Source: Octopus sinensis
Lineage: Eukaryota
Length of the DNA stretch: 64,000 bases
Assembly (NCBI RefSeq): GCF_006345805.1
Contig: NC_043005.1
Coordinates: 620,001-684,000, forward strand
Reading direction: 5' to 3'
Positions 31,960 to 64,000 of the stretch are shown in pieces. Made by a program: the position numbers and the translations under genes. Position 1 is the stretch's first letter, and the number at the start of each line of letters is the position of its first letter. Under the pieces are notes generated by a model, which saw only the letters and a program-made list of their open reading frames with translations, made no database searches and was not told the origin of the DNA.

Positions 31960-32280
31960 CTCATTTCACGCGTACACCGACACGCGGTCGTACAATGAAA
32001 TACATACATGTGTAGGTGTCAGTTGTGTCTTTGCATGTTAACCATAATATGCATATATATGTATGCATGTTTGTATGTGTCTAAGCATATATATATATAT
32101 ATATATATATACATTCCTTCTTCTTCTTCTTATTATTATTATTATTATTATTATGTTTATATCAATAATAACAATATAATTATACTTATAGTAATCTTCA
32201 CTAGACCATACATATTATAATAGATTCTAACATATCAGAAAATTACGAAACAAGATTAAGCATATATTTGTATATATATA

Positions 32281-32710
32281 TATATAAAACTGAGAGTGTG
32301 TGTCTGTCTGACTGTCTGTCTGTGTGCTTCCCTAAAACTTGAGAACTACACAACCAATTTCATTCAAATTTTACACATGCCTTACTTAGGGTCCATGTAG
32401 TTTCATAGGCAAAAAAATGTTCAACTTCTTGCCTAGAGCGAGCCCATAGCAATATTATATTTTCTCCACTATTTCAGTATTATGTGTTAAAAAGTGAAAC
32501 AAAAATATTTCTCTATTTTATGTCAGATACTTTCACTTTAACAATAAAAATTATAATAACAATTGAATTATATGTAGTAAGTGATAATTAAAATCATATT
32601 AAAGTATAATATAAGTAAAAATAGCAATTAGTATAAAATTGCATCAATGATTTGAAATTGAATAAGAAAAGACTATTGTCTATAAAGTATACAATGTGGA
32701 GAAAAAAGAG
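32281..32710 (+). mobile_element. Non-autonomous Helitron-like element copy A, 5' part
   Basis: Starts tatataaaactgag..(GTCT)n..; 32400-32710 is homologous to the reverse complement of 63259-63660. Confidence 0.6.
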
Positions 32711-32855
32711 GATTCGAACTGGTGTCGGAAATCTATGCGTGTTGTTATCTGTGACTAGACAGTGAAATTTTATTGTGTAAATTGATTATTATCGCGCGAG
32801 GCGTTTGCCTCCACGTGTGGAAACCTTCCGAAGAAGGTGAATTGACCCTCTAGTC

Positions 32856-34263
32856 ATGGCGACTTACGCGGGGGTCACGGGAAAGAAAAATAATGATTCG
32901 TCGATAATCGTGAAGGATGTTTTCTTTGAGAAGAGTAAACTCAAAGAATATGAAAAGCTATTCAAAAGGGAGGGTGATAGCGTGAAGCTAATCTCCCCCG
33001 CGAAAGCAAAAGAGGACAAAGAAAACAAGACTGTAACATATAGAACCCAAGACAAAAATACAAAGAAACTGGCAAGAGTGGAGATAGCAGAAATCGAAAA
33101 ATGTCTGGGAGACATAATGGGGAAATCGACCTACGTGAGTAGAGGCAAGAAATTTGGTAAGGTGGAGGTGAGATGTGCAACGGAAGAAATTGCAGCCTCA
33201 CTGGCTACCACTGTACTAAGAGCGGAAACATTTATAATGTGGCCCTCATACAAGGGAAGAAGAGGGGTCCGGGTTAAAATCCCGAATATACCCCCAGAAG
33301 TAAAAACAGAATGGCTGGCAACAGCTATTCTAGGAGCAGCAGAAGAGGAAGTGGAGGTGGAATCCTTTAAGGAGTCCAACGCGATAAACTGGAGAGGATA
33401 TGGGGTAGAACTGTGTTTGATGGCCACAAAAGAGGACATTGAAAGGTTCCCCTACAGAATAGAAATTGAAGATGAGAAAACCCTCAGTGTAATTGTAGAG
33501 GGAAGAAAGCCAAACTGCTACTTGTGCGGGACAAGGGGGCACATTAAAAAAGAGTGCCCGTTATACGAATTCGTAGCGGAGTGCGAGCAGGAACTCGAAG
33601 AAAAGAAGAATACGGTAAATGAAAAAGAAAACATAGAAAAGGAAACAAAACAACAAGAGAAAGGAAATAATAAGTCAATGAAGGAAAAAGAAATAAAAGA
33701 AAAGAAAGAAATAGAACCAAAACAGAGTCAGGAAAAATAAAAGGAAAAAGAAGCAACAGGAAAAAAACAAGAGAGAGATCAGAATCAAACGAAAAGAAAA
33801 GACGGCACACAAAAAGAAAAAGAAAAGGAACATAAAACACGAGAGAAAGAGAGAACAGACAAAGAACCAAAAAGACAAGAGAAGGAAGGAGAAAGAAAAG
33901 AAGGCAAAAAGAGAGAAAGAGAGAAACAAAGAGAGGAGAACAAGGAAGAAAATAAGCCCGAAAAGAAAAATGAAGGAAAACGTAGGACGGAAACAAGATT
34001 ACTGCTTCTACAAGTTAATAACCTTCCATTTCTGCCCTGAAATGAAGGATTTGACAAGTAATACGGAGGGACATGTGTGGGTCAACAGGATGACCGATCA
34101 GTGGCAGGAGACTGCTCTAATCCCCGAAGAAAGAGTCGCTGAGTTCCTCAGAGCTGCCGGTGAGAGTGTAACATTTTACACGAGTGTTCGAGTGAGAGAG
34201 CGGCTGCCTGAGGGCTCAGTGATAGACTTTAGAGAATTGAAAACTATCATGGAATATGTATAG
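32856..34263 (+). CDS. ORF1/Gag-like protein, unit 1 (consensus ~468 aa; here one stop and one 1-nt insertion in A-runs)
   Basis: MATYAGV, RGKKFGKVEVR, IPNIPPE, VEGRKPNCYLCGTRGHIKKEC (CX2CX4HX4C), K/E-rich tract, C-terminal DYCFYKL..EYV*. Confidence 0.8.
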
Positions 34264-34638
34264 AACTGTGAGAAGAGAGAGAAGAAAGAGAGAAAAAAGA
34301 AAATATTGTGAAATATATGTGACGAAAATGTAACCTCTCGATTCCGGGGATCGAGTGGGCATTTACATCTCATTGTAAATATTCTTTCATATGTCATTTT
34401 TTACTTTTATTTTTTCCTTTTCTTGTCATTCGCTTTCTTATTTTAAGTTCCCCGATTGTATTGTCCCCTCTATGTTCGCCCCTTGTGGGTAATAATAAAA
34501 TATGGTGTCGGAAATCTATGCGTGTTGTTATCTGTGACTAGACAGTGAAATTTTGTTGTGTAAATTGATTATTATCGCGCGAGGCGTTTGCCTCCACGTG
34601 TGGAAACCTTCCGAAGAAGGTGAATTGACCCTCTAGTC

Positions 34639-36043
34639 ATGGCGACTTACGCGGGGGTCACGGGAAAGAAAAATAATGATTCGTCGATAATCGTGAAGGA
34701 TGTTTTCTTTGAGAAGAGTAAACTCAAAGAATATGAAAAGCTATTCAAAAGGGAGGGTGATAGCGTGAAGCTAATCCCCCCCGCGAAAGCAAAAGAGGAC
34801 AAAGAAAACAAGACTGTAACATATAGAACCCAAGACAAAAATACAAAGAAACTGGCAAGAGTGGAGATAGCAGAAATCGAAAAATGTCTGGGAGACATAA
34901 TGGGGAAATCGACCTACGTGAGTAGAGGCAAGAAATTTGGTACGGTGGAGGTGAGATGTGCAACGGAAGAAATTGCAGCCTCACTGGCTACCACTGTACT
35001 AAGAGCGGAAACATTTATAATGTGGCCCTCATACAAGGGAAGAAGAGGGGTCCGGGTTAAAATCCCGAATATACCCCCAGAAGTAAAACAGAATGGCTGG
35101 CAACAGCTATTCTAGGAGCAGCAGAAGAGGAAGTGGAGGTGGAATCCTTTAAGGAGTCCAACGCGATAAACTGGAGAGGATATGGGGTAGAACTGTGTTT
35201 GATGGCCACAAAAGAGGACATTGAAAGGTTCCCCTACAGAATAGAAATCGAAGATGAGAAAACCCTCAGTGTAATTGTAGAGGGAAGAAAGCCAAACTGC
35301 TACTTGTGCGGGACAAGGGGGCACATTAAAAAAGAGTGCCCGTTATACGAATTCGTAGCGGAGTGCGAGCAGGAACTCGAAGAAAAGAAGAATACGGTAA
35401 CTGAAAAAGAAAACATAGAAAAGGAAACAAAACAACAAGAGAAAGGAAATAATAAGTCAATGAAGGAAAAAGAAATAAAAGAAAAGAAAGAAATAGAACC
35501 AAAACAGAGTCAGGAAAAAAAAAGGAAAAAGAAACAACAGGAAAAAAACAAGAGAGAGATCAGAATCAAACGAAAAGAAAAGACGGCACACAAAAAGAAA
35601 AAGAAAAGGAACATAAAACACGAGAGAAAGAGAGAACAGACAAAGAACCAAAAAGACAAGAGAAGGAAGGAGAAAGAAAAGAAGGCAAAAAGAGAGAAAG
35701 AGAGAAACAAAGAGAGGAGAACAAGGAAGAAATAAGCCCGAAAAGAAAAATGAAGGAAAACGTAGGACGGAAACAAGATTACTGCTTCTACAAGTTAATA
35801 ACCTTCCATTTCTGCCCTGAAATGAAGGATTTGACAAGTAATACGGAGGGACATGTGTGGGTCAACAGGATGACCGATCAGTGGCAGGAGACTGCTCTAA
35901 TCCCCGAAGAAAGAGTCGCTGAGTTCCTCAGAGCTGCCGGTGAGAGTGTAACATTTTACACGAGTGTTCGAGTGAGAGAGCGGCTGCCTGAGGGCTCAGT
36001 GATAGACTTTAGAGAATTGAAAACTATCATGGAATATGTATAG
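34639..36043 (+). CDS. ORF1/Gag-like protein, unit 2 (frameshifted in A-runs)
   Basis: Same protein split over ORFs 34639, 35133 and 35750. Confidence 0.7.
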
Positions 36044-36419
36044 AACTGTGAGAAGAGAGAGAAGAAAGAAGAGAAAAAAGAAAATATTGTGAAATATATG
36101 TGACGAAAATGTAACCTCTCGATTCCGGGGATCGAGTGGGCATTTACATCTCATTGTAAATATTCTTTCATATGTCATTTTTTACTTTTATTTTTTCCTT
36201 TTCTTGTCATTCGCTTTCTTATTTTAAGTTCCCCGATTGTATTGTCCCCTCTATGTTCGCCCCTTGTGGGTAATAATAAAATATGGTGTCGGAAATCTAT
36301 GCGTGTTGTTATCTGTGACTAGACAGTGAAATTTTGTTGTGTAAATTGATTATTATCGCGCGAGGCGTTTGCCTCCACGTGTGGAAACCTTCCGAAGAAG
36401 GTGAATTGACCCTCTAGTC

Positions 36420-37828
36420 ATGGCGACTTACGCGGGGGTCACGGGAAAGAAAAATAATGATTCGTCGATAATCGTGAAGGATGTTTTCTTTGAGAAGAGT
36501 AAACTCAAAGAATATGAAAAGCTATTCAAAAGGGAGGGTGATAGCGTGAAGCTAATCCCCCCCGCGAAAGCAAAAGAGGACAAAGAAAACAAGACTGTAA
36601 CATATAGAACCCAAGACAAAAATACAAAGAAACTGGCAAGAGTGGAGATAGCAGAAATCGAAAAATGTCTGGGAGACATAATGGGGAAATCGACCTACGT
36701 GAGTAGAGGCAAGAAATTTGGTACGGTGGAGGTGAGATGTGCAACGGAAGAAATTGCAGCCTCACTGGCTACCACTGTACTAAGAGCGGAAACATTTATA
36801 ATGTGGCCCTCATACAAGGGAAGAAGAGGGGTCCGGGTTAAAATCCCGAATATACCCCCAGAAGTAAAACAGAATGGCTGGCAACAGCTATTCTAGGAGC
36901 AGCAGAAGAGGAAGTGGAGGTGGAATCCTTTAAGGAGTCCAACGCAATAAACTGGAGAGGATATGGGGTAGAACTGTGTTTGATGGCCACAAAAGAGGAC
37001 ATTGAAAGGTTCCCCTACAGAATAGAAATTGAAGATGAGAAAACCCTCAGTGTAATTGTAGAGGGAAGAAAGCCAAACTGCTACTTGTGCGGGACAAGGG
37101 GGCACATTAAAAAAGAGTGCCCGTTATACGAATTCGTAGCGGAGTGCGAGCAGGAACTCGAAGAAAAGGAGAATACGGTAAATGAAAAAGAAAACATAGA
37201 AAAGGAAACAAAACAACAAGAGAAAGGAAATAATAAGTCAATGAAGGAAAAAGAAATAAAAGAAAAGAAAGAAATAGAACCAAAACAGAGTCAGGAAAAA
37301 AAAAAGGAAAAAGAAACAACAGGAAAAAAACAAGAGAGAGATCAGAATCAAACGAAAAGAAAAGACGGCACACAAAAAGAAAAAGAAAAGGAACATAAAA
37401 CACGAGAGAAAGAGAGAACAGACAAAGAACCAAAAAGACAAGAGAAGGAAGGAGAGAAGAAAAGAAGGCAAAAAGAGAGAAAGAGAGAAACAAAGAGAGG
37501 AGAACAAGGAAGAAATAAGCCCGAAAAGAAAAATGAAGGAAAACGTAGGACGGAAACAAGATTACTGCTTCTACAAGTTAATAACCTTCCATTTCTGCCC
37601 TGAAATGAAGGATTTGACATGTAATACGGAGGGACATGTGTGGGTCAACAGGATGACCGATCAGTGGCAGGAGACTGCTCTAATCCCCGAAGAAAGAGTC
37701 GCTGAGTTCCTCAGAGCTGCCGGTGAGAGAGTGTAACATTTTACACGAGTGTTCGAGTGAGAGAGCGGCTGCCTGAGGGCTCAGTGATAGACTTTAGAGA
37801 ATTGAAAACTATCATGGAATATGTATAG
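36420..37828 (+). CDS. ORF1/Gag-like protein, unit 3 (frameshifted)
   Basis: Same protein split over ORFs 36420, 36914 and 37533. Confidence 0.7.
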
Positions 37829-38204
37829 AACTGTGAGAAGAGAGAGAAGAAAGAAGAGAAAAAAGAAAATATTGTGAAATATATGTGACGAAAATGTAAC
37901 CTCTCGATTCCGGGGATCGAGTGGGCATTTACATCTCATTGTAAATATTCTTTCATATGTCATTTTTTACTTTTATTTTTTCCTTTTCTTGTCATTCGCT
38001 TTCTTATTTTAAGTTCCCCGATTGTATTGTCCCCTCTATGTTCGCCCCTTGTGGGTAATAATAAAATATGGTGTCGGAAATCTATGCGTGTTGTTATCTG
38101 TGACTAGACAGTGAAATTTTGTTGTGTAAATTGATTATTATCGCGCGAGGCGTTTGCCTCCACGTGTGGAAACCTTCCGAAGAAGGTGAATTGACCCTCT
38201 AGTC

Positions 38205-39609
38205 ATGGCGACTTACGCGGGGGTCACGGGAAAGAAAAATAATGATTCGTCGATAATCGTGAAGGATGTTTTCTTTGAGAAGAGTAAAATCAAGGAATAT
38301 GAAAAGCTATTCAAAAGGGAGGGTGATAGCGTGAAGCTAAGCCCCCCGCGAAAGCAAAAGAGGACAAAGAAAACAAGACTGTAACATATAGAACCCAAGA
38401 CAAAAATACAAAGAAACTGGCAAGAGTGGAGATAGCAGAAATCGAAAAATGTCTGGGAGACATAATGGGGAAATCGACCTACGTGAGTAGAGGCAAGAAA
38501 TTTGGTACGGTGGAGGTGAGATGTGCAACGGAAGAAATTGCAGCCTCACTGGCTACCACTGTACTAAGAGCGGAAACATTTATAATGTGGCCCTCATACA
38601 AGGGAAGAAGAGGGGTCCGGGTTAAAATCCCGAATATACCCCCAGAAGTAAAAACAGAATGGCTGGCAACAGCTATTCTAGGAGCAGCAGAAGAGGAAGT
38701 GGAGGTGGAATCCTTTAAGGAGTCCAACGCGATAAACTGGAGAGGATATGGGGTAGAACTGTGTTTGATGGCCACAAAAGAGGACATTGAAAGGTTCCCC
38801 TACAGAATAGAAATTGAAGATGAGAAAACCCTCAGTGTAATTGTAGAGGGAAGAAAGCCAAACTGCTACTTGTGCGGGACAAGGGGGCACATTAAAAAAG
38901 AGTGCCCGTTATACGAATTCGTAGCGGAGTGCGAGCAGGAACTTGAAGAAAAGAAGAATACGGTAAATGAAAAAGAAAACATAGAAAAGGAAACAAAACA
39001 ACAAGAGAAAGGAAATAATAAGTCAATGAAGGAAAAAGAAATAAAAGAAAAGAAAGAAATAGAACCAAAACAGAGTCAGGAAAAAAAAAGGAAAAAGAAA
39101 CAACAGGAAAAAAACAAGAGAGAGATCAGAATCAAACGAAAAGAAAAGACGGCACACAAAAAGAAAAAGAAAAGGAACATAAAACACGAGAGAAAGAGAG
39201 AACAGACAAAGAACCAAAAAGACAAGAGAAGGAAGGAGAAAGAAAAGAAGGCAAAAAGAGAGAAAGAGAGAAACAAAGAGAGGAGAACAAGGAAGAAATA
39301 AGCCCGAAAAGAAAAATGAAGGAAAACGTAGGACGGAAACAAGATTACTGCTTCTACAAGTTAGTAACCTTCCATTTCTGCCCTGAAATGAAGGACTTGA
39401 CAAGTAATACGGAGGGACATGTGTGGGTCAACAGGATGACCGATCAGTGGCAGGAGACTGCTCTAATCCCCGAAGAAAGAGTCGCTGAGTTCCTCAGAGC
39501 TGCCGGAGAGAGTGTAACATTTTACACGAGTGTTCGAGTGAGAGAGCGGCTGCCTGAGGGCTCAGAGATGGACTTTAGAGAGTTGAAAACTATCATGGAA
39601 TATGTATAG
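38205..39609 (+). CDS. ORF1/Gag-like protein, unit 4 (frameshifted)
   Basis: ATG at 38205; ORFs 38426 and 39316. Confidence 0.7.
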
Positions 39610-39985
39610 AATTGTGAGAAGAGAGAGAAGAAAGAAGAGAAAAAAGAAAATATTGTGAAATATATGTGACGAAAATGTAACCTCTCGATTCCGGGGATCG
39701 AGTGGGCATTTACATCTCATTGTAAATATTCTTTCATATGTCATTTTTTACTTTTATTTTTTCCTTTTCTTGTCATTCGCTTTCTTATTTTAAGTTCCCC
39801 GATTGTATTGTCCCCTCTATGTTCGCCCCTTGTGGGTAATAATAAAATATGGTGTCGGAAATCTATGCGTGTTGTTATCTGTGACTAGACAGTGAAACTT
39901 TGTTGTGTAAATTGATTATTATCGCGCGAGGCGTTTGCCTCCACGTGTGGAAACCTTCCGAAGAAGGTGAATTGACCCTCTAGTC

Positions 39986-41392
39986 ATGGCGACTTACGCG
40001 GGGGTCACGGGAATGAAAAATAATGATTCGTCGATAATCGTGAAGGATGTTTTCTTTGAGAAGAGTAAACTCAAAGAATATGAAAAGCTATTCAAAAGGG
40101 AGGGTGATAGCGTGAAGCTAATCCCCCCCGCGAAAGCAAAAGAGGACAAAGAAAACAAGACTGTAACATATAGAACCCAAGACAAAAATACAAAGAAACT
40201 GGCAAGAGTGGAGATAGCAGAAATCGAAAAATGTCTGGGAGACATAATGGGGAAATCGACCTACGTGAGTAGAGGCAAGAAATTTGGTACGGTGGAGGTG
40301 AGATGTGCAACGGAAGAAATTGCAGCCTCACTGGCTACCACTGTACTAAGAGCGGAAACATTTATAATGTGGCCCTCATACAAGGGAAGAAGAGGGGTCC
40401 GGGTTAAAATCCCGAATATACCCCCAGAAGTGAAAACAGAATGGCTGGCAACAGCTATTCTAGGAGCAGCAGAAGAGGAAGTGGAGGTGGAATCCTTTAA
40501 GGAGTCCAACGCGATAAACTGGAGAGGATATGGGGTAGAACTGTGTTTGATGGCCACAAAAGAGGACATTGAAAGGTTCCCCTACAGAATAGAAATTGAA
40601 GATGAGAAAACCCTCAGTGTAATTGTAGAGGGAAGAAAGCCAAACTGCTACTTGTGCGGGACAAGGGGGCACATTAAAAAAGAGTGCCCGTTATACGAAT
40701 TCGTAGCGGAGTGCGAGCAGGAACTTGAAGAAAAGAAGAATACGGTAAATGAAAAAGAAAACATAGAAAAGGAAACAAAACAACAAGAGAAAGGAAATAA
40801 TAAGTCAATGAAGGAAAAAGAAATAAAAGAAAAGAAAGAAATAGAACCAAAACAGAGTCAGGAAAAAAAAAAGGAAAAAGAAACAACAGGAAAAAAACAA
40901 GAGAGAGATCAGAATCAAACGAAAAGAAAAGACGGCACACAAAAAGAAAAAGAAAAGGAACATAAAACACGAGAGAAAGAGAGAACAGACAAAGAACCAA
41001 AAAGACAAGAGAAGGAAGGAGAGAAAGAAAAGAAGGCAAAAAGAGAGAAAGAGAGAAACAAAGAGAGGAGAACAAGGAAGAAATAAGCCCGAAAAGAAAA
41101 ATGAAGGAAAACGTAGGACGGAAACAAGATTACTGCTTCTACAAGTTAGTAACCTTCCATTTCTGCCCTGAAATGAAGGATTGACATGTAATACGGAGGG
41201 ACATATATGGGTCAACAGGATGACCGATCAGTGGCAGGAGACTGCTCTAATCCCCGAAGAAAGAGTCGCTGAGTTCCTCAGAGCTGCCGGAGAGAGTGTA
41301 ACATTTTACACGAGTGTTCGAGTGAGAGAGCGGCTGCCTGAGGGCTCAGTGATAGACTTTAGAGAATTGAAAATATCATGGAATATGTATAG
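39986..41392 (+). CDS. ORF1/Gag-like protein, unit 5 (first 366 codons open, then frameshifts)
   Basis: ORF 39986..41086 plus 41181 fragment. Confidence 0.75.
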
Positions 41393-41857
41393 AACTGTGA
41401 GAAGAGAGAGAAGAAAGAAGAGAAAAAAGAAAATATTGTGAAATATATGTGACGAAAATGTAACCTCTCGATTCCGGGGATCGAGTGGGCATTTACATCT
41501 CATTGTAAATATTCTTTCATATGTCATTTTTACTTTTATTTTTTCCTTTTCTTGTCATTCGCTTTCTTATTTTAAGTTCCCCGATTGTATTGTCCCCTCT
41601 ATGTTCGCCCCTTGTGGGTAATAATAAAATATGGAGTCGGAAATCAATTTTTTGCGTTATTAGTAAGTTGATATATTTTTGCTCTCGTACTATTATCTCT
41701 GTTATTATATACTGTTGGTCTACCTGTTTTGTCTATTGTTGTCTAACTGACGAAGTCAGCCTTCGTGCGAAGACTTCGCGTTGGTGTTCCCCCTCCGTGG
41801 GGGAAAACTACAATTAATTTGGATTTACCAAAGGCTTGTTAAAGCCATTTGTTCAAG

Positions 41858-43238
41858 ATGGAGTCCCCCATCTCTTATTCGCCCGTGACGAGTGAGGATG
41901 AATACCCGGCGTTGTCGCCAGGAAAAAAAGAGGCGTTGTCGCCAAAAAAAAGAGGCGTTGTCGCCGAAGAAAAAAGAGGCGGCGTCGCCCAAGAAAATGG
42001 AAAAACCAGTACCAGCATCAACTCCAGCAAAAAAATTCGCTGAAGTGGCTGGGAAAAAGATCAAAAAAATAAATATAGAAAATTTTGGAAAATTTGCAGA
42101 CTGCGTAAAAAAAGAAGGCACAGAAGTGACTGTGGCCACAAACATACAAAAACATGACGAGATAGAAAAAAAAAAGAATATTATTTAAAACTTACGACAC
42201 AACGACAAGAATGATCCAAAAAATCGAAGAAAAAAAAATAGAGTATTGTCTAAAACCTTTTATGGATAAAATAACGTATATAATCAGAGGAAAAAGATAC
42301 GGCACAGTGGAGGTGCGTTTTACTACGGAGGAGATAGCGAAGAAACTATCGATGGAGCCGATCAAAGCGGAAAACATTGTCTTACTACCATTGTATAAAG
42401 GAAAAAGGACGTCGAAAATTTCAATGAACAACATACCGCCAGAGGCAGATGCTGAATGTCTGGTGGCAGCAGTGATGGTAGGTCTGGAGGAAAAAATAAA
42501 CATCCTCCAGGCCACAGTGGAGGAAGAGGAGTTTTGGAAAGGGCAGAAAATAGTGATAGCCATTCAGGCGGAGGTGCAAACACTGGAAGAAATTCCAGAA
42601 ACGGTAAAGATTAGTGAAGACGAGAAAATAACAGTTTTCGTGGAGGGCAGGAAGCCGAGGTGCTTCGGCTGCGGCAAGAAGGGTCATGTAAGGGCGGAAT
42701 GCCAACCCCAACCCAAACCGCAGGAAGCACCAAAGCCAAAAGAAAAAGAAGATAATGTCTCACCAGAAGCAGCGTCGGACGGCCCAGAAGGGAAGACTGA
42801 AGGTGTGGAGGTGACGGTGACAGCAGAACCAGCGGCGGAGGGGGAAAAAAAGAGCGAGGAAAAGATAAATGAGGAGGGGTGGGAAAAAATTACCGGAAAA
42901 AAAAAAAGAAAAACGGAAACCACCCCTCCCAGAGTAATTTTAAAAAAGAAAAAGAGTCAATGAACTCGTATATGGCCGTAAAGGCAGCAAATAGCAGACT
43001 CGGAAACGTGTTGGCAGCCATGGCCAAAGTGGAGAAAGTAGTGAAAAAAAACGACTTTGTAATTTACAGAATAGGCCGGAAGGATTACGGGCGGATAAAG
43101 TCAGAATTCTTCCATGACGTAGGCCCACTTAGATTGGATGTGACATCTCCACATATATTCGAGGGCCTACGTCAGACTCCCCCACGAGGCCCAGAAAAAG
43201 AGTTAGAAGAACAAGAGAAAACCGAACCACTGATATAA
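41858..43238 (+). CDS. LINE ORF1 (CCHC knuckle; frameshifts in A-runs)
   Basis: MESPISYSP.., KKFAEVAGKK, RGKRYGTVEVRF, NNIPPE, VEGRKPRCFGCGKKGHVRAEC, ..TEPLI*. Confidence 0.85.
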
Positions 43239-43246
43239 GGTAAGTA

Positions 43247-46200
43247 ATGGATTACATTTATGTTGGTTGTTTGAATGTGCGCGGCCTGGGAGCAGGCTGG
43301 AAGCAAGGTCGCTTCCTGCATGATATCAGGTCGCGTAATTTAGATGTTATTGTTGCTACAGAAACCCGGTTAGAGGGGCCAAGAGGTCTACTCCCGCTGT
43401 TTGACGGCTACGAGAGTTTTTTCTCTCCTGGCAGTCCTACAGGCGGGAGTGGGGTGTTGGTCCTATTAAAAAGAAACCGGGTTTCTGAGAAAAAGTTAAT
43501 TTTTGCAGATCCAGAAGGTAGGCTGGTCGTCATGGATTTGACGTTCAGTAATGGTAAAGTTATCAGACTGGTTGCAATTTACGCACCCAACCATACAGGG
43601 CAAAGTGATTATTTTCGTGAACTAGAAAACTTTCTTGGTACTTCGCATTCATTAGTGGTGCTAGGAGACTTTAACACAATTTGCAAAGCGGATGTAGATT
43701 GTGTTGGCTCGCGTCCAGATAGAAAAGGCAACAGTGGCTTCATGGAACTGCTAAGCCGCTTTGAGCTAGCAGATCCTTATAGGCTGGAATTTCCGAACGC
43801 TCCATTGTGGACATGGTCAAACAGCGACGGATCTTCCAGGTCATATTTAGATAGAATACTAATTAGAAAAGTAGACAGTAAAATAGCTAAGTGTCCACAG
43901 TTTTACCCGATCAGCTACAGTGATCATAAAATGGTCACTTGTAAGCTTGACATAGATAAGGTTAAAAATAGAGGATCCGGTTACTGGAAACTTAATACGT
44001 CCCTTTTGGCGATTAAGGAGTACAAAGACCGGATTAGGAATATAATTCAGAGGGCACTATCTGGTACCATCATTAATAACAAATGGTGGTACGCCCTCAA
44101 ACGAGCCATCAAGTTTGAGTCTATTAGATATAGCATAGGAGTAGTGGCTAGAGAGGCTAGAAGGGAAACTACTCTAGTTAAGGAATTAGAGGAAGCCATG
44201 AAAACTGGCTCTGCGGCTCAGGTGGCGTCCAAGAGACTGGTGTTAAACCAGCACCTCGAGGCCAAACACATGGGCTGCATTGTCAGGGCTAGAATCCGCC
44301 ATATGGGATGTGAAGGAATCAACGCCGTGAGATGGGCCCGAGTGGTGGAAGCTCAGCATGGTAACGATGCCACGATTCGATCTTTGACGAACCAACAAGG
44401 TGAGTTGATAAACGAACCCGAGGAGATGTGTGAGGCCTTTCAGGAGCACTTCGCTCAGCTTTTCGGTGAGTGCGGCGGACTGGATAGGAGGAGGGCCTTT
44501 ACGGACCTACTCGACGGGCTGCCGCGCTTATCGGGGCGAGATGCGGAGGGCTGTGAAGGGCCAATCACGCCTGAGGAGGTGGTTGAGGCAATGGCGGACT
44601 GCGGCGCGGGCAAGGCGCCGGGTTTGGATGGTCTACCCTATGAGTTATATAAGAGTATGCCAGACTTGTTCGGGCACCTACTGGCGGAGGTCTATGCGAA
44701 CTGGCAGCAGAACGGGCTTATACCCAGATCTGTGCGCCGGGGAGTAGTGACTCTCGTCAGAAAGGACCCGAGCAAGGGGGAGTGCATTGATAATTTCAGG
44801 CCCATCACTCTGCTAAACACAGAGTTGAAGATTTTGGCCAAAGTGTTATCGAAAAGATTGGCGCGTGTCGCGGATGGTCTGATCGGAGAGGCACAGACAT
44901 GTGCCGTTCCGGGCAGATCCATTCAGGATAATCTCCATCTAATGCGGTACACTATAGAGGGGTTTAATAGTGATTCTGGCAAGGGTGGGGCACTGGTCCA
45001 TTTAGACCAATCTAAAGCTTTTGATAGGGTCGACCATCGTTACCTGGTATCTGCCCTGGCACAGTTCGGGCTGAGCCTTGGCTTCCTCAGGTGGATTATC
45101 CAAATTTATGATAACATCGACTCGGTAGTTCGGGTGAACGGCTTCTTGTCGAAGCCGTTCAAAATCAAACGCTCGGTTCGTCAAGGGTGTCCGCTCTCCC
45201 CGCTTTTGTACGTGATGGCTCTTGAGCCATTACTGCGAAAACTGAGCGGCATCCCGAGACAGCCAGGTAATGGAAAATCAGTGTCAGCGTACGCGGATGA
45301 CATCACCATCATCGTAACCGAAATGGACCACCTATGTAAAGTAGGCAAGGCCATAGAGGTTTACGAGACGGTGACAGGAGCAAAAGTTAATCGCGAAAAG
45401 TCAGTCGGCTTGCAACTCGGCACCTGGAGAGGCAAGTCGATGCCTCCTGACAGCGTCGTGGGACGTTGGACGGAGGGTCCGATTAAACTGCTAGGGGTCT
45501 GGTTCGGTCCAGACCTCCAAATAGAGAAGAATTGGGGCGAGGTAACGAGCAAGGTGGCTGCAGTAGCCAAGACCTGGTCTTGGCGGTGGCTATCCCTGAA
45601 AGGGAGGGCGGAGGTGGCCAATGTGTTTATCGCATCGGTTATCACCTACCGCCTTTCCGTCGTTCCTTGCCCTGATTCGTGGTTGATCAAGTTGGAAAGA
45701 CAGCTCTTCTACTTCTTGTGGAAGGGCGGGAAACCACTTGTGAAACGCTCTACTTGCTGTCAACAACCGTTAAAGGGTGGGCTAGGGATGCCTTGGCTGA
45801 TGATGCGCAGACATGCGCTGAGGTTAAGACATCTGTGGCTCTACCTGGATGGTGAACGGGTGTGGTCTCCGCTAGCAAAACTGATGTTTCCCAAGTTCAC
45901 TAGTTTCGGTGGATGGGAAACCTGGCTGAATCGTAGATCGAAACTTGGTACTTGGTACACGGAGTGTCGCAAGGCTCTCCTGCTATTCCGTCGCTCGGGC
46001 AACGCCTGCGGTGGGGGTTCCACCACATTCTTCTATAGAGGGTTGGTAGAGGCGGAATGTGAAGATACCTTGGGGGAAACCCTAGGTCTCGACGATAATC
46101 AGCTGGCCAGTCTGTTCCGACGTACGTTCGAGCCGAGGACACTGGACAACTTCCAGAAGTCTCTGGCATGGCAATGCTACAGAGGAGCTCTACCTGTTCG

Positions 46201-46642
46201 GGATAAACTCGCAAGGCACGGTGGCCAAGACAGTCCGATATGTCCAAGATGCGGGCGGGATAGGGAAACCGTCCCGCACGCTATTGTTCATTGTCCGGAC
46301 GTGTCTGAGGTGTGGGTTTATGCCGAACAGCTGTTGTCAGGTACACGAAGAGTACAGCTGTCGACTGAGTCGATTACAAAAATTGACCCACCGGATTTCC
46401 TCGTGAATGAAGGTAAGTTTCGTTTTCTCGTTGTAGTAGCAATTGCGAAAGAGGTGATATGGAAGACGAGAATGAAAGGTTTACAGTCAGGCAAGTTCAT
46501 CTCCGGCCCTGGTTTGATGAATTATTTCATCTTTCACCTGAAAAGGAAGATAGGGCTGGAGAGAATATGCCTGACTAGGAGAGTGTATGAAGAACGATGG
46601 AAGGATGTAGCACGAAAGTTGCGAGTGAAAGATACAACATAA
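43247..46642 (+). CDS. LINE ORF2: APE endonuclease, reverse transcriptase, C-terminal CCHC; intact 1131 aa
   Basis: LNVRGL, VATETR, VLGDFN, SYLDRIL, YSDHK, SGYWKLN, KAPGLDGLP, NFRPITLLN, DQSKAFDRVDH, RQGCPLSP, AYADD, CPRC..ETVPHAIVHC. Confidence 0.97.
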   Translation: MDYIYVGCLNVRGLGAGWKQGRFLHDIRSRNLDVIVATETRLEGPRGLLPLFDGYESFFSPGSPTGGSGVLVLLKRNRVSEKKLIFADPEGRLVVMDLTFSNGKVIRLVAIYAPNHTGQSDYFRELENFLGTSHSLVVLGDFNTICKADVDCVGSRPDRKGNSGFMELLSRFELADPYRLEFPNAPLWTWSNSDGSSRSYLDRILIRKVDSKIAKCPQFYPISYSDHKMVTCKLDIDKVKNRGSGYWKLNTSLLAIKEYKDRIRNIIQRALSGTIINNKWWYALKRAIKFESIRYSIGVVAREARRETTLVKELEEAMKTGSAAQVASKRLVLNQHLEAKHMGCIVRARIRHMGCEGINAVRWARVVEAQHGNDATIRSLTNQQGELINEPEEMCEAFQEHFAQLFGECGGLDRRRAFTDLLDGLPRLSGRDAEGCEGPITPEEVVEAMADCGAGKAPGLDGLPYELYKSMPDLFGHLLAEVYANWQQNGLIPRSVRRGVVTLVRKDPSKGECIDNFRPITLLNTELKILAKVLSKRLARVADGLIGEAQTCAVPGRSIQDNLHLMRYTIEGFNSDSGKGGALVHLDQSKAFDRVDHRYLVSALAQFGLSLGFLRWIIQIYDNIDSVVRVNGFLSKPFKIKRSVRQGCPLSPLLYVMALEPLLRKLSGIPRQPGNGKSVSAYADDITIIVTEMDHLCKVGKAIEVYETVTGAKVNREKSVGLQLGTWRGKSMPPDSVVGRWTEGPIKLLGVWFGPDLQIEKNWGEVTSKVAAVAKTWSWRWLSLKGRAEVANVFIASVITYRLSVVPCPDSWLIKLERQLFYFLWKGGKPLVKRSTCCQQPLKGGLGMPWLMMRRHALRLRHLWLYLDGERVWSPLAKLMFPKFTSFGGWETWLNRRSKLGTWYTECRKALLLFRRSGNACGGGSTTFFYRGLVEAECEDTLGETLGLDDNQLASLFRRTFEPRTLDNFQKSLAWQCYRGALPVRDKLARHGGQDSPICPRCGRDRETVPHAIVHCPDVSEVWVYAEQLLSGTRRVQLSTESITKIDPPDFLVNEGKFRFLVVVAIAKEVIWKTRMKGLQSGKFISGPGLMNYFIFHLKRKIGLERICLTRRVYEERWKDVARKLRVKDTT

Positions 46643-46890
46643 ATGTAATACCAAGCGCAACCAAAAGTATCAGTGGGGAGGCGGGGCTCGTGGGGTCCGA
46701 GCTAAACCCGCACCCACTCCACCCGTAATGTCTTCCGGTCTGTCCCATCATTCGATTTCTGTCCATTTATTGTAATTCATGAAAATTTTTAAATTCGATT
46801 GATTGTAAAAACCCATTCGTGTGTCTGACCCCATCATCAGATTGTATTGTCCCATCTATGTTCGCCCCTTGTGGGTAATAATAAAACAAC

Positions 46891-47170
46891 ATGGAGGAAA
46901 GCACCTTCGAAAAGTGTCTTGGTGCGACTATGAAAGTTATCTAATCAGAGGCGGTAAATTCGCCACAATAGAAGCAAGATTCGAGGGAGTACTCGACTCG
47001 AACTTGCAAAGTGGAAATGTTTTATTTTTACCTTTATATTTGAGACGTAGGACGTCCCTAAAAAAAATTTTTAATCCCCCCCCCCCCGAAGTAGAGGTAG
47101 GCTGGATTGTAGCCACACTTCTATACAAGAGGAAGGACAAGATACAATTGATCGAAATTATAAGAGACGG
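46891..47170 (+). pseudogene. Fragment of a third, more diverged ORF1 paralog directly behind the LINE tail
   Basis: MEESTFEKCLGA..LIRGGKFATIEARF..LQSGNVLFLPLYLRRRTS..NPPPPEVEVGWIVATLL aligns with IRGKRYGTVEVRF..AENIVLLPLYKGKRTS..NIPPEADAECLVAAVM. Confidence 0.7.
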
Positions 47171-47363
47171 GCTAACAATTCCAGTCTGTTATATATTTTG
47201 AGTATTGTTATCACTAGCGATATCAAGATATAACTTTGTATTTTGTATTTTATGTGTAGATGTATATATATATAGATGTACATGTAATATGTACATATAT
47301 ATACATACACATATATACATGCACTAGCACTATGACCCGGCAACGACGGGTCGTTAATGCAAG
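47171..47363 (+). mobile_element. Helitron-like element copy A, 3' part with terminal hairpin
   Basis: GACCCG-gcaacga-CGGGTC (47334-47352) followed by gttaatgCAAG; the same end in copy B reads CTAG. Confidence 0.7.
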
Positions 47364-47425
47364 TTTATATCTATATATTCATACATATAATATATGTATA
47401 CAAATATAAATGAATATAAACATAT

Positions 47426-57818: not shown

Positions 57819-57859
<41 letters not shown>

Positions 57860-57888
57860 TATGTATATATAATATATATTTATATATA

Positions 57889-58075
57889 CTAGCATTAAAG
57901 ACCCGTCGTTGCCGGGTCATTGAGCTAGTGCATGTATATATGTGTATATATATATATGTACATATTACATGTACATCTATATATATACATCTACACATAA
58001 AATGCAAAATACAAAGTTATATCTTGATACCACTAGTGATAACAATACTCAAAATATATAACAGACAGGAATTGT
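57889..58075 (-). mobile_element. Helitron-like element copy B, 3' part (hairpin plus CTAG)
   Basis: Minus strand GACCCG-gcaacga-CGGGTC-tttaatg-CTAG; homologous to 47176-47363. Confidence 0.72.
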
Positions 58076-61000
58076 TTTATTATTACCCACAAGGGGCGAA
58101 CATAGAGCGGACAATACAACCTGATGTGGGATCAGATATACGAATTGGGTTACACAAAGATGAGTTTAAAAATTCAATGAAATACAAATATAAAATCGAA
58201 TGGGGAACAGCCCGGAAGACATTACGGATGGAGTGGGAGCGGGTTTAGCTCGGACCCCACGAGCCCCGCCTCCCCACTGATACTTTGGTTTCATCTAGTT
58301 TTATATTAATGTGGTATCATCCACTCGCAACTTTCGTGCTACATCTTTCCATCGTTCTTCATACACTCTCTTAGTCAGGCATTTTCTCTCCAGCCCTATC
58401 TTCCTTTTCAGGTGAAAGATGAAGTAATTCATCAAACCAGGGCCGGAGGTGAACTTGCCTGACCGTAAACCTTTCATTCTCGTCTTCCATATCACCTCTT
58501 TCGCAATTGCTTCTACAACGAGAAAACAATTCTTACCTTCTTTCGTGAGGAAATCTGGTGACTCAATTTTTGTAATAGACTCAGTCGACAGATGTACTCT
58601 TCGTGTGCATGACAACAGCTGTTCGGCATAAACCCACACCTCAGACACGACCGAACAATGAACAATAGCGTGCGGGACGGTTTCCCTATCCCGCTCGCGT
58701 CTTGGACATATCGGACTGTCTTGGCCACCGTGCCTTGCGAGTTTATCCCGAACAGGTAGAGCTCCTCTGTAGCATTGCCATGCCAGAGACTTCTGGAAGT
58801 TGTCCAGTGTCTTCGGCTTGAACGTACGTCGGAACAGACTGGCAAGCCGATTATCGTCGAGACCTAGGGTTTCCCCCAAGGTATCTTCACATTCCGCCTC
58901 TACCAACCCTCTATAGAAGAATGTGGTGGAATCCCCACCGCAGGCGTTGCCCGAGCGACGGAATAGCAGGAGAGCCTTGCGACACTCCGTGTACCATGTG
59001 CCCAGTTTCGATCTACGATTCAGCCAGGTTTCCCATCCACCGAAACTAGTGAACTTGGGAAACATCAGTTTTGCTAGCGGAGACCACACCCGTTCACCAT
59101 CCAGGTAGAGCCACAGATGTCTTAACCTCAGCGCATGTCTGCGCATCACCAGCCAAGGCATCCCTAGCCCACCCTTTAACGGTTGTTGACAGCAAGTAGA
59201 GCGTTTCACAAGTGGTTTCCCGCCCTTCCATAAGAAGTAGAAGAGCTGTCTTTCCAACTTGATCAACCACGAATCAGGGCAAGGAACGACGGAAAGGCGG
59301 TAGGTGACAACCGATGCGATAAACACATTGGCTACCTCCGCCCTCCCTTTCAGGGATAGCCAACGCAAAGACCAGGTCTTGGTTACTGCAGCAATCCTGC
59401 TCGATACCTCGCCCCAATTGCTCTCTATTTGGAGGTCTGGACCGAACCAAACCCCTAGCAACTTAATCGGACCCTCCGTCCAACGTCCCACGACGCTGTC
59501 AGGAGGCATCCACTTGGCTCTCCAGGTGCCGAGTTGCAAGTCGACTGACTTTTCACGATTAACTTTTGCTCCTGTCACCGTCTCGTAAACCTCTATGGCC
59601 TTGCCTACTTTACGTCGGTGATCCATTTCGGTTACGATGATTGTGATGTCATCCGCGTACGCTGACACCGATTTTCCACAACCTGGCTGTCTCGGGATGC
59701 CACTCAGTTTTCGCAGTAGTGGCTCAAGATCCATCACGTACAAAAGCGGGGAGAGCGAACACCCTTGACGAACCGAGCACTTGATGTTGAACGGCTTCGA
59801 CAAGAAGCCGTTCACCCGAACCACCGAGTCGATGTCGTCGTAAATTTGGATAATCCACCTGAGGAAGCCAAGGCCCAGCCCGAATTGTGCCAGGGCAGAT
59901 ACCATGTAGCGATGGTCGACCCTTCGAATGCTTTAGATTGGTCTAAATGGACCAGTGTCCCACCCTTGCCAGAATCACTATTAAACCCCTCTATAGTGTA
60001 TTGCATGAGATGGAAATTATCCTGAATGGTTCTGCCGGAAACGGCACATGTCTGTGCCTCCCCGACCAGACCATCCGCGACACGCGCCAATCCTTTCGAT
60101 AACACTTTAGCGAAAATCTTCAACTCTGTGTTTAGCAGAGTGATGGGACTGAAATTATCAATGCACTTCCCCTTGCTCGGGTCCTTTCTGACGAGTGTCA
60201 CTACTCCCCAGCGCACAGATCAGGGTATGAACCCGTTCTGGTGCCAGTTCGCATAGACCTCCGCCAGTAGGTGCCCGAACAAGTCTGGCACACTCTTATA
60301 TAACTCATAGGGTAGACCATATAAACCCGGCGCCTTGCCCGCGCCGCAGTCCGCCATCGCCTCAACCACCTCACCAAGCGTGATTGGCCCTTCACAGCCA
60401 TCCGAATCTTGCCCCGATAAGCGCGGCAGCCCGTCGAGGAGGTCCGTAAAGGCTCTCCCCCTATCCAGTCCGCCGCACTCGCCGAAAAGCTGAGCGAAGT
60501 GATCCTGAAGGGCCTCACACATCTCCTCGGGCTCGTTTATCAACTCACCTTGTTGGTTCGTCATAGATCGAATCGTGGCGTCGTTACCACGCTGAGCTTC
60601 CACCACTCGGGCCCATCACACGGCGTTGATTCCTTCACAACACATTGCGCGGATCCTAGCCCTGACAATGCAGCCCATATGTTTGTTCTCGAGGTGCTGG
60701 TTTAACGCCAGTCTCTTGGCCGCCACCTGAACCACAGAGCCAGATTTCAAGGCTTCCTCTAATTCCTTAACTTGAGTAGATTCCTTCCTAGCCTCTTTTG
60801 CCACTAATCCTATGCTATATCTAATAGACTCGAATTTGATGGCTCGCTTGAGGGCATACCACCATTTGTTATTAATGATGGCACCAGATAGCGCCCTCTG
60901 AATTATAGTCCTAATCCGGTCTCTGTACTCCTTAATCGCCAAAAGGAACGTATTAAGTTTCCAGTAACCGGAGCCTCTATTTTTAACCTTATCTATATCA

Positions 61001-63245
61001 AGCTTACAGGTGACCATGTTATGATCACTGTAGCTGACCAGGTATAACTGTGGACACTTAGCTATTTTTCTGTCTACTTTTCTAATTAGTATCCTATCTA
61101 AATATGACCTGGAAGATCCGTCGCTGTTTGACCATGTCCACAATGGAGCGTTCGGAAATTCCAACCTATAAGGATCTGCCAGCTCAAAGCGGCTTAGCAG
61201 TTCCAGGAAGCCAATGTTACATTTTCTATCTGGACGCAAGCCAACACAATCTACATCCGCTTTGCAAATTGTGTTAAAGTCTCCTAGCACAACTAATGAA
61301 TGCGAAGTAGCAAGAAAGTTTTCCAGTTCTCGAAAATAATCACTTTGCCCTTTTTGGTTGGGTGCGTAAATTGCAACCAGTCTGATAACTTTACCATTAC
61401 TGAACGTCAAATCCATGACGACCAGCCTACCTTCTGGGTCTGAAAAAATTAACTTTTTCTCAAAAACCCGGTTTCTTTTTAATAGGACCTATACCCCACC
61501 CCCGCCTGTAGGACTGGCCGGAGAGAAAAATCTCTCGTAGCCGTCAAACAGCGGGATAAGACCTCTTGGCCCCTCTAACCGGGTTTCTGTAGCAACAATA
61601 ACATCCAAATTACGCGACCTGATATCATTAAGGAAGCTACCTTGCTTCCCGCTTGATCCCAGGCCGCGCACATTTAAACAACCAACATAAATGTAATCCA
61701 TGACTTACCTTATATCAGTGGTTCGACTTTTCCTTTCTCTTCTTCATTTTTTTCCCTCTTTTTCTGGGCCTCGTGGGCGAGTCTGACGCAGGCCCTCGAA
61801 TATATATGGTGATGATATATCCATTCTGAGAGGGCCCACGTCATGAAAAAATTCGGACTTTATCCGTCCGTAATCCTTCCGGCCTATTCTATACAATATG
61901 TAATCATTTTTTCTTCCAATTTTTTCTACCTTGGCCATAGCTGCCAACACATTACCGAGTCTATTATTTGATGCCTTAATGGCCATAAATGAGTTCAATG
62001 TTTTTTTTTTCTTTTGGCTCACTTTCAAAGGGGTGGATTCAGTTTTTCTTTTTTTCCTAGTGATTTTTGACCACCCCTCCTCATTTTTCGTTTCCTCGCT
62101 CTTTGTTTCCTCCGCCGCCGGTTCCGCTGCCTCTGTCACCTCCACACCTTCAGGCGTCCCTTCTGGGCCGCCCGACGCTGCTTCTGGTGACACCTCTTCT
62201 GTTCTTCCACCTGGCTGAGCTGCTTCCTGCGGTTTGGGTTGGCATTCTGCTCTTACATGCCCTTTCTTACCGCAGCCGAAGCACCTCGGCTTTCTGCCCT
62301 CTACAAAGACTGTGACTCGTTCCTCCTCACTGATTTTCAGTGTCTCCGGAATCTCTTCCAGGGTTTGTATCTCTGCCTGGATGGCTATCGTTATACGCTG
62401 CCCTTTCCAATTTTCTTCCTCCTCTACTGTGGCCTGGAGGATGTTTATTTTTTCCTCCAGGCCTACCATAACTGCTACCACCAGACATATGGCGTCCGCT
62501 TCTGGCGGAATATTGTTCATTGTTATCCTTGAGGTTCTTTTGCCTCTATACAGGGGGAGGAGAACAATATTCTCCGCTTTCATGGGTTCCATGGATAGCT
62601 TTTTGGCTACCTCCTCCGTTGCAAATCTCACCTCCACCGTGCCGTATTTCTTCCCGCGATTGATGTACGTAATCTTATCCCTTATCGGCTTTAGGCAGTT
62701 TTCTATTTTTTTCTCCTCTATTCTTTGTATAGACTTACTTGGGATGTTGAAAGTCTTGTATATTATTCTTTTTTTATCAATCTCTTCTTGCTTTTGGGCA
62801 TTCGTAACCACCGTTACTTCTGTGCCCTCTTTTATCAAACAGTCTGCGTATTTCTGCAGGTTTTCAGTGTTAATTTTTTTTTATTTTCTTTCCAGCTACT
62901 TCAGAAAATTTTCTAGCTGGTGCTGGGATTTCTCCTTTCTTCGGCGACACCGCCGGTGATCCTGCATCACTTGACACGGGTGAATAGGAGATGGGGGCGT
63001 CCATCTCCGAAAACTCGCTTAACAAGCCTTTAGCACAACCGCGACAAAAAGATTTTGGTTTTGCAAGCCTCAAGTGCAGCAATAATGATATTTTTTCCCC
63101 CACGGAGGAGGAACACCAACACGAAGCCCTCGCACGAAGGCTGATTACAATAATTGCACACCAACAGACAATACAGACAAAGTCAATCAGAAACACAGTA
63201 GAATATAACGGAAGAAAATATAATGACTCACTACACACTCAATGA
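58076..63245 (-). mobile_element. Full-length Tx1/L1-clade LINE (copy B, diverged lineage, ORF2 frameshifted)
   Basis: ORF1 ~63004-61710, ORF2 61701-58301 in five pieces. Imperfect 13-bp TSD agacaggaattgt (58063-58075) / agactggaggtgt (63246-63258). Confidence 0.93.
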
Positions 63246-63258
63246 AGACTGGAGGTGT

Positions 63259-63660
63259 TAGCTCTTCTTTTTTCTCTACATTGTATACTTTATAGATAAT
63301 AGTCTTTTCTTTAATTTAAGTTTTTATTATCCATCTGGACTATTCCATTTCTGCACGCTAATTTTATTTTTAATTTATTCCCATTCATGTGAAACCACTT
63401 ATTCAATTTCAAATCATTGATGCAATTTTATACCAATTGCTATTTTTACTTATATTATACATTAGTTTGATTTTAATTATTACTTACTACATATAATTCA
63501 ATTGTTATTATTATTTTTATTGTTAAAGTGAAAGCATCTGACAAAAAATAGAGAAATATTTTTGTTTCACTTTTAACACGTAATACTGAAATAGTAGAGA
63601 AGATATAATATTGCTATGGGCTCGCTCTAGGCAAGAAGTTGAACATTTCTTTTGCCCATG
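63259..63660 (-). mobile_element. Helitron-like element copy B, 5' part (truncated)
   Basis: Reverse-complement homology to 32400-32710, with an extra ~85 bp absent from copy A. Confidence 0.65.
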
Positions 63661-64000
63661 AAACTGTGCGGTAAGAAGCTTTATTCTCAAACTCGTGGTT
63701 GCGGTGTTCAATCCCACTACAAGGAACCATGGGCATATGTCATCTAACATAGCTTCAAGCGATTCAAAACTGTGAATGGGACTATTATGAGAAGTCCGTC
63801 ATATATATACATATATATAACAATAATATTAAGGAATGGCCTTGATAGGCCATTCAACTCACTAAAACGAGCAGCCAAACTCAAACCGCTAAACAGTAGT
63901 AATTCAGAAATCAAAGGAAAATTAAAAACATTTACCCTTATCATCTTTGGACTATGTATAGTTTTGACGTACTTTTGCAAACCATCTCAATTAAATTAAA

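Follow-up and report, generated by a model that had tools for sequence, protein, structure and literature searches.

Parasites of long interspersed nuclear elements (LINEs) that retain an ORF1 gene only are well documented in just two settings, the mammalian HAL1 elements and the HeT-A-like elements of Drosophila telomeres. HAL1 elements are non-autonomous, encode ORF1p only, obtain their endonuclease (EN) and reverse transcriptase (RT) from a LINE, and have arisen more than once (PMC5753468). HeT-A, TART, TAHRE and other Drosophilid telomeric elements of the Jockey clade are target-specialised LINEs that build head-to-tail arrays, where ORF1-only lineages rely on the ORF2 of autonomous elements residing alongside them; loss of ORF2 is recurrent among them, ORF1-only lineages beget new ORF1-only lineages, and such loss is seemingly confined to telomere-specialised, array-forming Drosophila lineages (PMC13534243). 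Stacking at a shared target has been described in crocodilians, where Tx1-Mar LINEs and the SINEU family of short interspersed nuclear elements (SINEs) occupy one site in a Mariner element, in tandem and by sequential insertion, 'sandwiching a TSD' (target-site duplication) of 16 bp (PMC4494074). The current work concerns a 64,000-nucleotide stretch of Octopus sinensis DNA, referred to as the window (NCBI RefSeq assembly GCF_006345805.1, contig NC_043005.1, positions 620,001 to 684,000, forward strand), in which five copies of an ORF1-only unit stand head to tail upstream of a LINE. We consider it likely that this unit is a non-autonomous non-LTR (long terminal repeat) retrotransposon, carrying an ORF1-type gene only, which stacks at a site in an older dispersed repeat (T) via trans-mobilisation by the adjacent LINE.

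An initial annotation, made from the letters of the window alone, had proposed a head-to-tail array of 1.78-kb units at 32720-41631, and repeat finding confirmed five direct head-to-tail units there, with a start-to-start spacing of 1781-1785 bp. Unit 1 (32720..34502, 1783 bp) consists of a 14-nt junction motif, a 5' untranslated region (UTR), an open reading frame (ORF), a 3' UTR and a LINE-type tail; its ATG is at 32856 and its ORF is broken after 294 aa. It is followed, likewise on the forward strand, by unit 2 (34503..36283, 1781 bp, ORF split by one frameshift), unit 3 (36284..38068, 1785 bp, ORF split by frameshifts), unit 4 (38069..39849, 1781 bp, with subfamily-informative variants in common with unit 5) and unit 5 (39850..41631, 1782 bp, ATG at 39986 and 366 aa open). 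Each unit is 99.2-99.8% identical to the five-copy consensus, and the five copies differ by ~25 substitutions and about a dozen small indels, the latter mainly in homopolymer runs.

Immediately 3' to unit 5 lies LINE A, the autonomous partner (41632..46886, forward strand, 5.26 kb), which begins with a junction motif of 12-14 nt (41632-41645) and ends in a 3' tail at 46840-46886. Its ORF1 (~41859-43238) shows a putative RRM-like region and a CCHC motif (Pfam) and has frameshifts in A-runs, whereas its ORF2 (43247-46642) is intact and specifies 1131 aa with an APE endonuclease, an RT (YADD) and a zf-RVT domain (Pfam Exo_endo_phos 2e-13, RVT_1 2.5e-31, zf-RVT 1.4e-8). ORF2 matches human L1 ORF2p (residues 3-867, E=9e-66), far above its R2 protein match, and on these ORF2 domains and this match LINE A is assigned, at group level, to the L1/Tx1-group non-LTR retrotransposons, the level at which the Tx1 identity originally proposed is upheld. 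In a protein-database search with the LINE ORF2, no near-identical annotated ORF2 was found, the best match being 58% identical. The last 47 nt of the unit (34454-34500 in unit 1) are 97.9% identical to the 3' end of LINE A (46840-46886), so that the common 3' end noticed at first inspection is real. The first 14 nt are also alike, being tggtgtcggaaatc in the unit and tggagtcggaaatc in the LINE (one base apart), as are the bases just after this 14-mer, TC(A/T)AT..GCG.

The consensus of the unit contains a single ORF of 468 aa (MATYAGV...MEYV), the product of which comprises a core with the motifs RGKKFGTVEVR and NIPPE, a CCHC knuckle (VEGRKPNCYLCGTRGHIKKEC; zf-CCHC in Pfam, scoring 22.9 bits where the cut-off is 20.8), a K/E tract of ~150 aa and a C-terminal region of ~85 aa. 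Domain and similarity searches of the unit returned no similarity to EN or RT, and consensus translation and Pfam together agree with the earlier description of a single ~468-aa ORF1 paralog bearing these motifs and free of EN and RT. Homology to the LINE ORF1 is confined to the core (38% identity over 147 aa, E=7e-37), in keeping with the large distance between the two proteins that had been noted, and the N- and C-terminal parts are unrelated to the LINE ORF1; a weak C-terminal echo of the LINE ORF1 end, also suggested at that stage, was not recovered when both C-termini were compared by BLASTP (E=0.3, not significant). An AlphaFold2 model of the unit protein from an 11-sequence alignment reached a mean predicted local distance difference test score of 35.6, too low for a fold search, and a PDB sequence search with the unit ORF gave marginal CCHC matches only. 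At the RNA level, the 'structured' 5' UTR that had been claimed for the unit is poorly sustained (fold z=-1.9, with 6 of 200 shuffles folding equally well), the stability of the 3' tails is not above that of shuffles (z between -0.8 and 0.1), and an Rfam scan of 30000-48000 at permissive E-values detected no ribozyme (e.g. hepatitis delta virus-like) or other RNA family at the unit and LINE 5' ends, only microsatellite 'miRNA' (microRNA) noise.

The ORF is broken in every one of the five window copies; its longest open stretches are 294 and 366 aa, and the breaks fall mostly in homopolymer runs. An intact ORF of 467 aa is present in one copy of Octopus vulgaris (L001_u5). A run of six or seven C's at unit nt ~275 (for instance window 32991-32997 and 34774-34780) toggles the reading frame: C7 opens the full 468-aa ORF, while with C6 an ORF of 380 aa that begins at an internal Met stays open, and databases annotate this shorter form. 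C7 is found in three of the five window copies and in 5/20 family-1 copies of O. vulgaris, and window unit 1 reads CTCCCCC, of equal length; the run could be a slippage hotspot, a sequencing error, or the source of two protein forms. Between the consensus sequences of two unit subfamilies, alpha and beta, the ratio of non-synonymous to synonymous substitution rates (dN/dS) is 0.20 (33 synonymous and 29 non-synonymous differences; binomial p=5e-9 versus neutrality), falling to 0.13 in the part made up of the N-terminus, core and CCHC knuckle. The unit ORF has therefore been kept by purifying selection in the propagating lineage and, together with the one intact copy, this ratio bears out the proposal of an independently maintained ORF1-only lineage. 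The octopus unit thus resembles HAL1 in being an ORF1 homologue without EN or RT, but HAL1 elements are recent L1 deletion derivatives with a poly(A) end and dispersed insertion, whereas the octopus unit has an ORF only 38% identical to the ORF1 of its partner, a specific 47-nt tail and site-specific tandem insertion, and at least five diverged ORF1-only families coexist in octopus.

A protein search with the unit matched only Octopus proteins, all from the O. vulgaris assembly and annotated as 'uncharacterized protein LOC...', and proteins of the family are annotated on at least 11 O. vulgaris chromosomes. Eleven loci (L001 to L011) were fetched from the chromosome-level assembly of this species, the window locus not being among them; every locus except a second locus of the window (locus B, see below) was ascertained through unit ORFs or proteins. 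The unit family is present at nine further loci on eight chromosomes, so that dispersed copies, for which the initial annotation had advised a search, do exist. The order of elements found in the window recurs at nine loci. L001 consists of the left arm of T (T-left), eight units and a LINE; L002 of T-left, one unit, a LINE and the right arm (T-right); L003 of at least seven complete units, a further one interrupted by the locus boundary, a LINE and T-right; L004 of T-left, a gamma-like element, a unit, an epsilon unit, a LINE and T-right; L005 of T-left, four units, a LINE and T-right; L009 of T-left, three units and a LINE; and L010 and L011 each of T-left, several gamma-like elements, one unit, a LINE and T-right. 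In L007, two epsilon units and a LINE are flanked by the arms of a variant of T (T'-left and T'-right). The loci are chromosome-internal, at 24-157 Mb on chromosomes of 73-226 Mb, with T on both sides. This sets them apart from HeT-A and TART, which belong to the Jockey clade and are added to chromosome ends, while the octopus elements are of the L1/Tx1 group, chromosome-internal and T-flanked, with TSDs that show endonuclease-type insertion.

Annotation of the ORFs as uncharacterised proteins and purifying selection on them are also what would be seen if the array were a tandem host gene family, that is, a domesticated gag/ORF1-like gene merely adjoining a LINE. This explanation is regarded as very improbable, given that every copy terminates in the LINE 3' tail and lies TSD-bracketed inside another repeat, that most copies are frameshifted, that copy number ranges from 0 to at least 8 between loci, and that several diverged families act alike at other target sites.

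The unit subfamilies cut across loci. The window's alpha units differ by 0.8-1.5% from L001_u8 and L002_u1, whereas the beta units of L001, L003, L005 and L009 are 0.5-2% apart from one another and 4.5-5.5% from alpha units in the same array. Unit and LINE subfamilies do not co-vary: the LINEs of L001 and L003 differ by 0.5% and their adjacent units by 4.1%, and the LINEs of the window and L001 differ by 7.6% and their adjacent units by ~1%. Both observations point to independent insertion rather than duplication of a composite. Within the window, the differences between units 1-3 and units 4-5 fall at sites that are polymorphic between subfamilies genome-wide, which indicates that this array derives from at least two source lineages.

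These data also bear on the possibility that the array arose by local tandem duplication alone, in the manner of a satellite and driven by unequal crossing-over, from an internally deleted LINE without mobility of its own. The high similarity of the window units, their identical junctions and the near-identical neighbours found elsewhere (L001_u6/u7, 0.2%; L009_u2/u3, 0.6%) are in line with it, and unequal exchange probably contributes to copy number. As the whole explanation it is nevertheless most unlikely: the unit occurs at nine other loci on eight chromosomes with subfamilies common between them, its ORF is too far from the LINE ORF1 for a recent deletion derivative, dN/dS is 0.20, junctions change unit by unit in L003 and L005, and the two groups of window units are separated at subfamily-polymorphic sites. 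A derivative restricted to one locus, lacking both dispersal and selection, which the initial annotation had named as its own counter-case, is accordingly not what was found.

The array and LINE A are embedded in T, a ~1.1-kb repeat (left ~430-600 bp, right 480 bp) bounded by (TA)n and with 5' shortening that varies among copies. T-left of the window array (32286..32719, forward strand) ends in ...gagaaaaaagaggattcgaac and shows 4-7% substitutions relative to the sequences upstream of the arrays in L001, L002, L004 and locus B; it is also found upstream of the arrays in L005, L009, L010 and L011. T-right (46887..47365, forward strand) begins with the target 12-mer (CA)ACATGGAGGAAAGC, and its 3' end carries a hairpin, gacccggcaacgacgggtc, followed by (TA)n. 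The first part of T-right (46887-47169, termed frag3, present also in T-right of L002-L005, L010 and L011) is a degenerate fragment of ORF1-like type (…YLIRGGKFATIEARF…NPPPPEVEVGW…), most similar to the unit ORF, and T may descend from an old ORF1-bearing retroelement. In locus pairs with a difference of 1.1-1.2% between the LINEs and of ~1.2% between the units, the T arms diverge by 4.5-6.7%, from which it follows that T is older than its inserts. An alternative in which T-left, LINE and T-right form one long LINE targeting (TA)n was rejected, since divergence of the arms is 4-6x that of the LINE in these pairs; it is also contradicted by the LINE/T-right boundary, which bears the tail that ends units and SINEs elsewhere.

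Locus B, also in the window, contains LINE B (58075..63262, reverse strand), a second LINE copy, 89% identical and with broken ORFs, which sits in another T copy without ORF1-only units. Its T-left arm (63263..63665, reverse strand) belongs to a 5'-shortened T copy, and its T-right arm (57819..58074, reverse strand) begins at T-right position ~284 and so lacks frag3; the flanks of the array locus and of locus B align at 94-95% (32399-32712 versus 63665-63263) and 88% (47174-47427 versus 58076-57819). LINE B uses a second site, 283 bp deeper into T, with the target ACAATTCC(A/T)GTCT. T', the variant seen in locus B and L007, lacks exactly the frag3 segment (283-290 bp) and carries its LINE at this second site, on the far edge of that segment.

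The junctions are uniform at their 3' side: in 7/7 site-1 loci the T-right bases CA-ACATGGAGGAAAGCACC come directly after the LINE tail, ...GGGTAATAATAAAA, and in two loci the tail abuts the second fixed site. On the 5' side of every element there is a copy or variant of ACATGGAGGAAA, and the edge of the array is preceded by T-left ...GATTTGAAC. In L002, both sides of the unit carry a locus-specific variant, ACATGGCTCCAAGC, while T-right keeps the canonical ACATGGAGGAAAGC, a pattern that would look like the TSD expected if the unit had inserted upstream of an already resident LINE. The T' loci (L007 and locus B) have another sequence, ACAATTCCAGTCT(GTTATA), duplicated at each junction, with a TSD of 13-19 nt at every junction of L007. 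In L006, two ORF1-only elements of other families stand in tandem in the head of a SINE, each bracketed by ~14 nt (AGAAACGTyAGCAC), with no LINE nearby; across loci, TSDs measure 12-19 nt. The likeness of the first ~14 nt of unit and LINE, to which the initial annotation had drawn attention, therefore stands, but its reading as an element end does not: the variant bracketing the L002 unit and the different sequence duplicated in the T' loci led to rejection of the 14-mer as nothing but the element's own 5' end, and it is chiefly a 12-14-nt TSD that recreates the T site.

Use of one site in another repeat by both LINE and partner, with a TSD between tandem copies, is shared with Tx1-Mar and SINEU, and also with Tx1L in Tx1D of Xenopus; more generally, sequence-specific insertion, often into another repeat, is a feature of the Tx1 clade that is also seen for the octopus LINE. 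SINEU elements, however, are short and non-coding with heads derived from small nuclear RNAs, whereas the octopus partners are 1.6-2.0 kb long, protein-coding and under purifying selection.

Mixed arrays are layered. In 4/4 arrays that mix beta with other subfamilies, the beta block occupies the 5' extreme (P~3e-5 under random order); in L004, L010 and L011 this position is taken by gamma-like elements, and the junction 12-mers of L003 change in a nested manner from the LINE outward (ACATGG to ACATCG to ACAGCG). The 5'-most beta blocks and the nested changes fit successive insertion at the T-left copy of a rebuilt target, and arrays thus appear to grow at this edge; of the initial proposal that units insert at the 5' end of the LINE, their location upstream of it is retained, but new copies appear to enter at the T-left edge, distal to the LINE. 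In the mechanism envisaged, the ORF2 protein (endonuclease and RT) of the adjacent L1/Tx1-group LINE would mobilise the unit in trans, recognising the common 47-nt 3' tail and nicking a specific site, ...GAAC|ACATGGAGGAAA..., inside T, and the ORF1-like protein would serve in forming the ribonucleoprotein of the element. Each insertion would duplicate ~12-14 nt of target and so rebuild the site at the T-left edge, where the next element could enter; the outcome would be a head-to-tail array with the oldest element beside T-right and the youngest beside T-left. Local duplication or recombination probably also adjusts copy number, because window junctions are identical and near-identical neighbours occur elsewhere.

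Several observations weigh against this interpretation. The argument for trans-mobilisation is drawn entirely from sequence, namely the common tail, target and TSD; a complete ORF1 (~447 aa) was seen in no LINE copy, even though ORF2 is intact in LINE A and in the LINE of L002; and all five window copies and most other copies of the unit are frameshifted. Target-site specificity is deduced from occupied sites, at loci ascertained through unit proteins, and the ~330 kb examined (window plus 11 loci) contain no empty T site. In L003 and L005 the junction 12-mers vary more than the surrounding units, and 5' joining is not a clean duplication. Finally, 11/11 T and T' loci hold exactly one LINE, always 3'-most, which a simple shared-target model does not predict. 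None of the ~60 ORF1-only copies in the window and loci is 5'-truncated, all beginning at the full-length 5' end, and this lack of truncation, unusual for LINE-mobilised sequences, suggests homology-guided or otherwise precise 5' joining.

The single LINE, which would then necessarily be 3'-most, and the variable junctions are accommodated if each array was laid down as a composite in one event, either by read-through retrotransposition of a [units-LINE] transcript or by ORF2p starting on LINE RNA in cis and then template-jumping onto unit RNAs. The RTs of non-LTR elements are known to jump between templates end to end, and variable junctions would be expected from such jumps. Such an origin is nevertheless judged unlikely, as LINE and adjacent-unit subfamilies fail to co-vary (see L001 and L003 above), four arrays have the same young subfamily as their 5'-most block, an arrangement suggestive of layers that differ in age, and the L002 unit is bracketed by its locus-specific TSD variant; moreover, arrays begin with full-length units and not with random 5' truncations, and L006 has ORF1-only elements with no LINE nearby, while those of L008 include some that lie downstream of one.

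Returning to sequential trans-mobilised insertion, the position of the LINE (P~4e-6 for being 3'-most by random order in the eight arrays with units) implies that the LINE arrived first and that later arrivals were all ORF1-only. It is possible that LINEs saturated all T copies early, that a new upstream LINE recombines with the resident one and collapses the array, that the sample is biased by its ascertainment through unit proteins, or that the resident LINE is coupled in cis with incoming ORF1-only RNAs. Two LINEs are chimeric: that of L005 (14857-19777) is 95% identical to LINE A over its 5' 1.2 kb and 99.7% over its 3' 3.7 kb, with an internal deletion of ~320 bp, and that of L007 (11556-16223) joins a B-like 5' half (80%) to an A-like 3' half (95%). 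Both are compatible with recombination between tandem LINEs, and hence with array collapse, or with RT template switching.

The presence of one LINE in the 3'-most position is not universal at other targets. At L008 (OX597818.1, 96.86-96.90 Mb), an array between two large haemocyanin genes consists of a gamma-like element and a related LINE (LINE-C), which three ORF1-only elements follow on its downstream side; its 3'-most member is thus no LINE, and the target is a third one, ATCATCGATACTC. At least five further ORF1-only families were recognised (epsilon, delta, L008_c/e types, gamma and L008_d; 21-55% DNA divergence), all of which terminate in variants of the unit/LINE tail. The same applies to a SINE-like retroposon in the window (30603-30835, reverse strand), whose 3' end, ttgtcccctctgtgtttagccccttgtgggtaataaagaaa (…tgtcccctctgtgtttagccccttgtgggtaataaagaaa), is a variant of this tail and which has a box-B-like GTTCAAATTCC; ARAGORN detected no tRNA-like head on the tail-sharing SINE. 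Further copies of it lie at 30485-30601 (partial, reverse strand) and 10201-10419 (related, forward strand), one abutting a 5'-shortened second copy, and it is the head of this tail-sharing SINE that serves in L006 as target of the two ORF1-only elements.

A broader reading, offered here as a tentative and rather doubtful one, is that Octopus genomes host a guild made up of a SINE, several site-specific LINEs of the L1/Tx1 type and at least five ORF1-only families that evolve independently of one another. Together these would build self-renewing landing pads, in which a LINE alone would found an empty T and ORF1-only elements alone would extend an occupied T, as the 11/11 loci suggest. If true, it would imply cis-acting coupling between a resident LINE and the RNAs of incoming ORF1-only elements, or else a 'reset' by recombination through which LINE...LINE arrays collapse, and ORF2 loss would be a predictable outcome of target-specialised, array-forming LINEs, convergent with the Drosophila telomeric elements.

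Other repeats of the window include a LINE ORF2 fragment at 14799-15650 (forward strand; 40-62% protein identity to the C-terminal part of LINE A ORF2) and distant RT fragments at 21571-22134 and 56068-56814 (both forward strand; 23-24% identity). A 492-bp tandem repeat occupies 26917-28118 (2.4 copies, 99% matches), and ~110 bp related to it are found at 63828-63936, immediately beyond the T-left arm of locus B. Low-complexity tracts rich in trinucleotides occur at 31800-31978, 32109-32184 and 48883-48967; they are of the (TTA)n type or resemble (CTA/CTG)n with a period of 9 nt. Long tetranucleotide microsatellites lie at 5460-5678, 19922-20190 and 29985-30179.

Both ingredients of the octopus system, ORF1-only partners and Tx1-type stacking at a shared target, are known, and their combination in a cephalopod appears to be undescribed, literature searches having returned no description of an ORF1-only/LINE stacking system in cephalopods. 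What distinguishes it is the nature of the partners, which code for a protein, have ORF1 only, parted from the LINE ORF1 long ago and stack site-specifically at internal sites. It represents an independent case, in a mollusc, with a different LINE group, internal sites, target-specific stacking and several ORF1-only lineages under purifying selection. For genome annotation, the unit ORFs are at present listed as ordinary 'uncharacterized protein' genes in Octopus genomes. The arrays constitute dated layers, and the equal order of subfamilies across loci provides a direct record of subfamily succession. The system also supports a general rule, according to which LINEs that share a renewable landing site readily give rise to cheaters that keep only the RNA-packaging gene.

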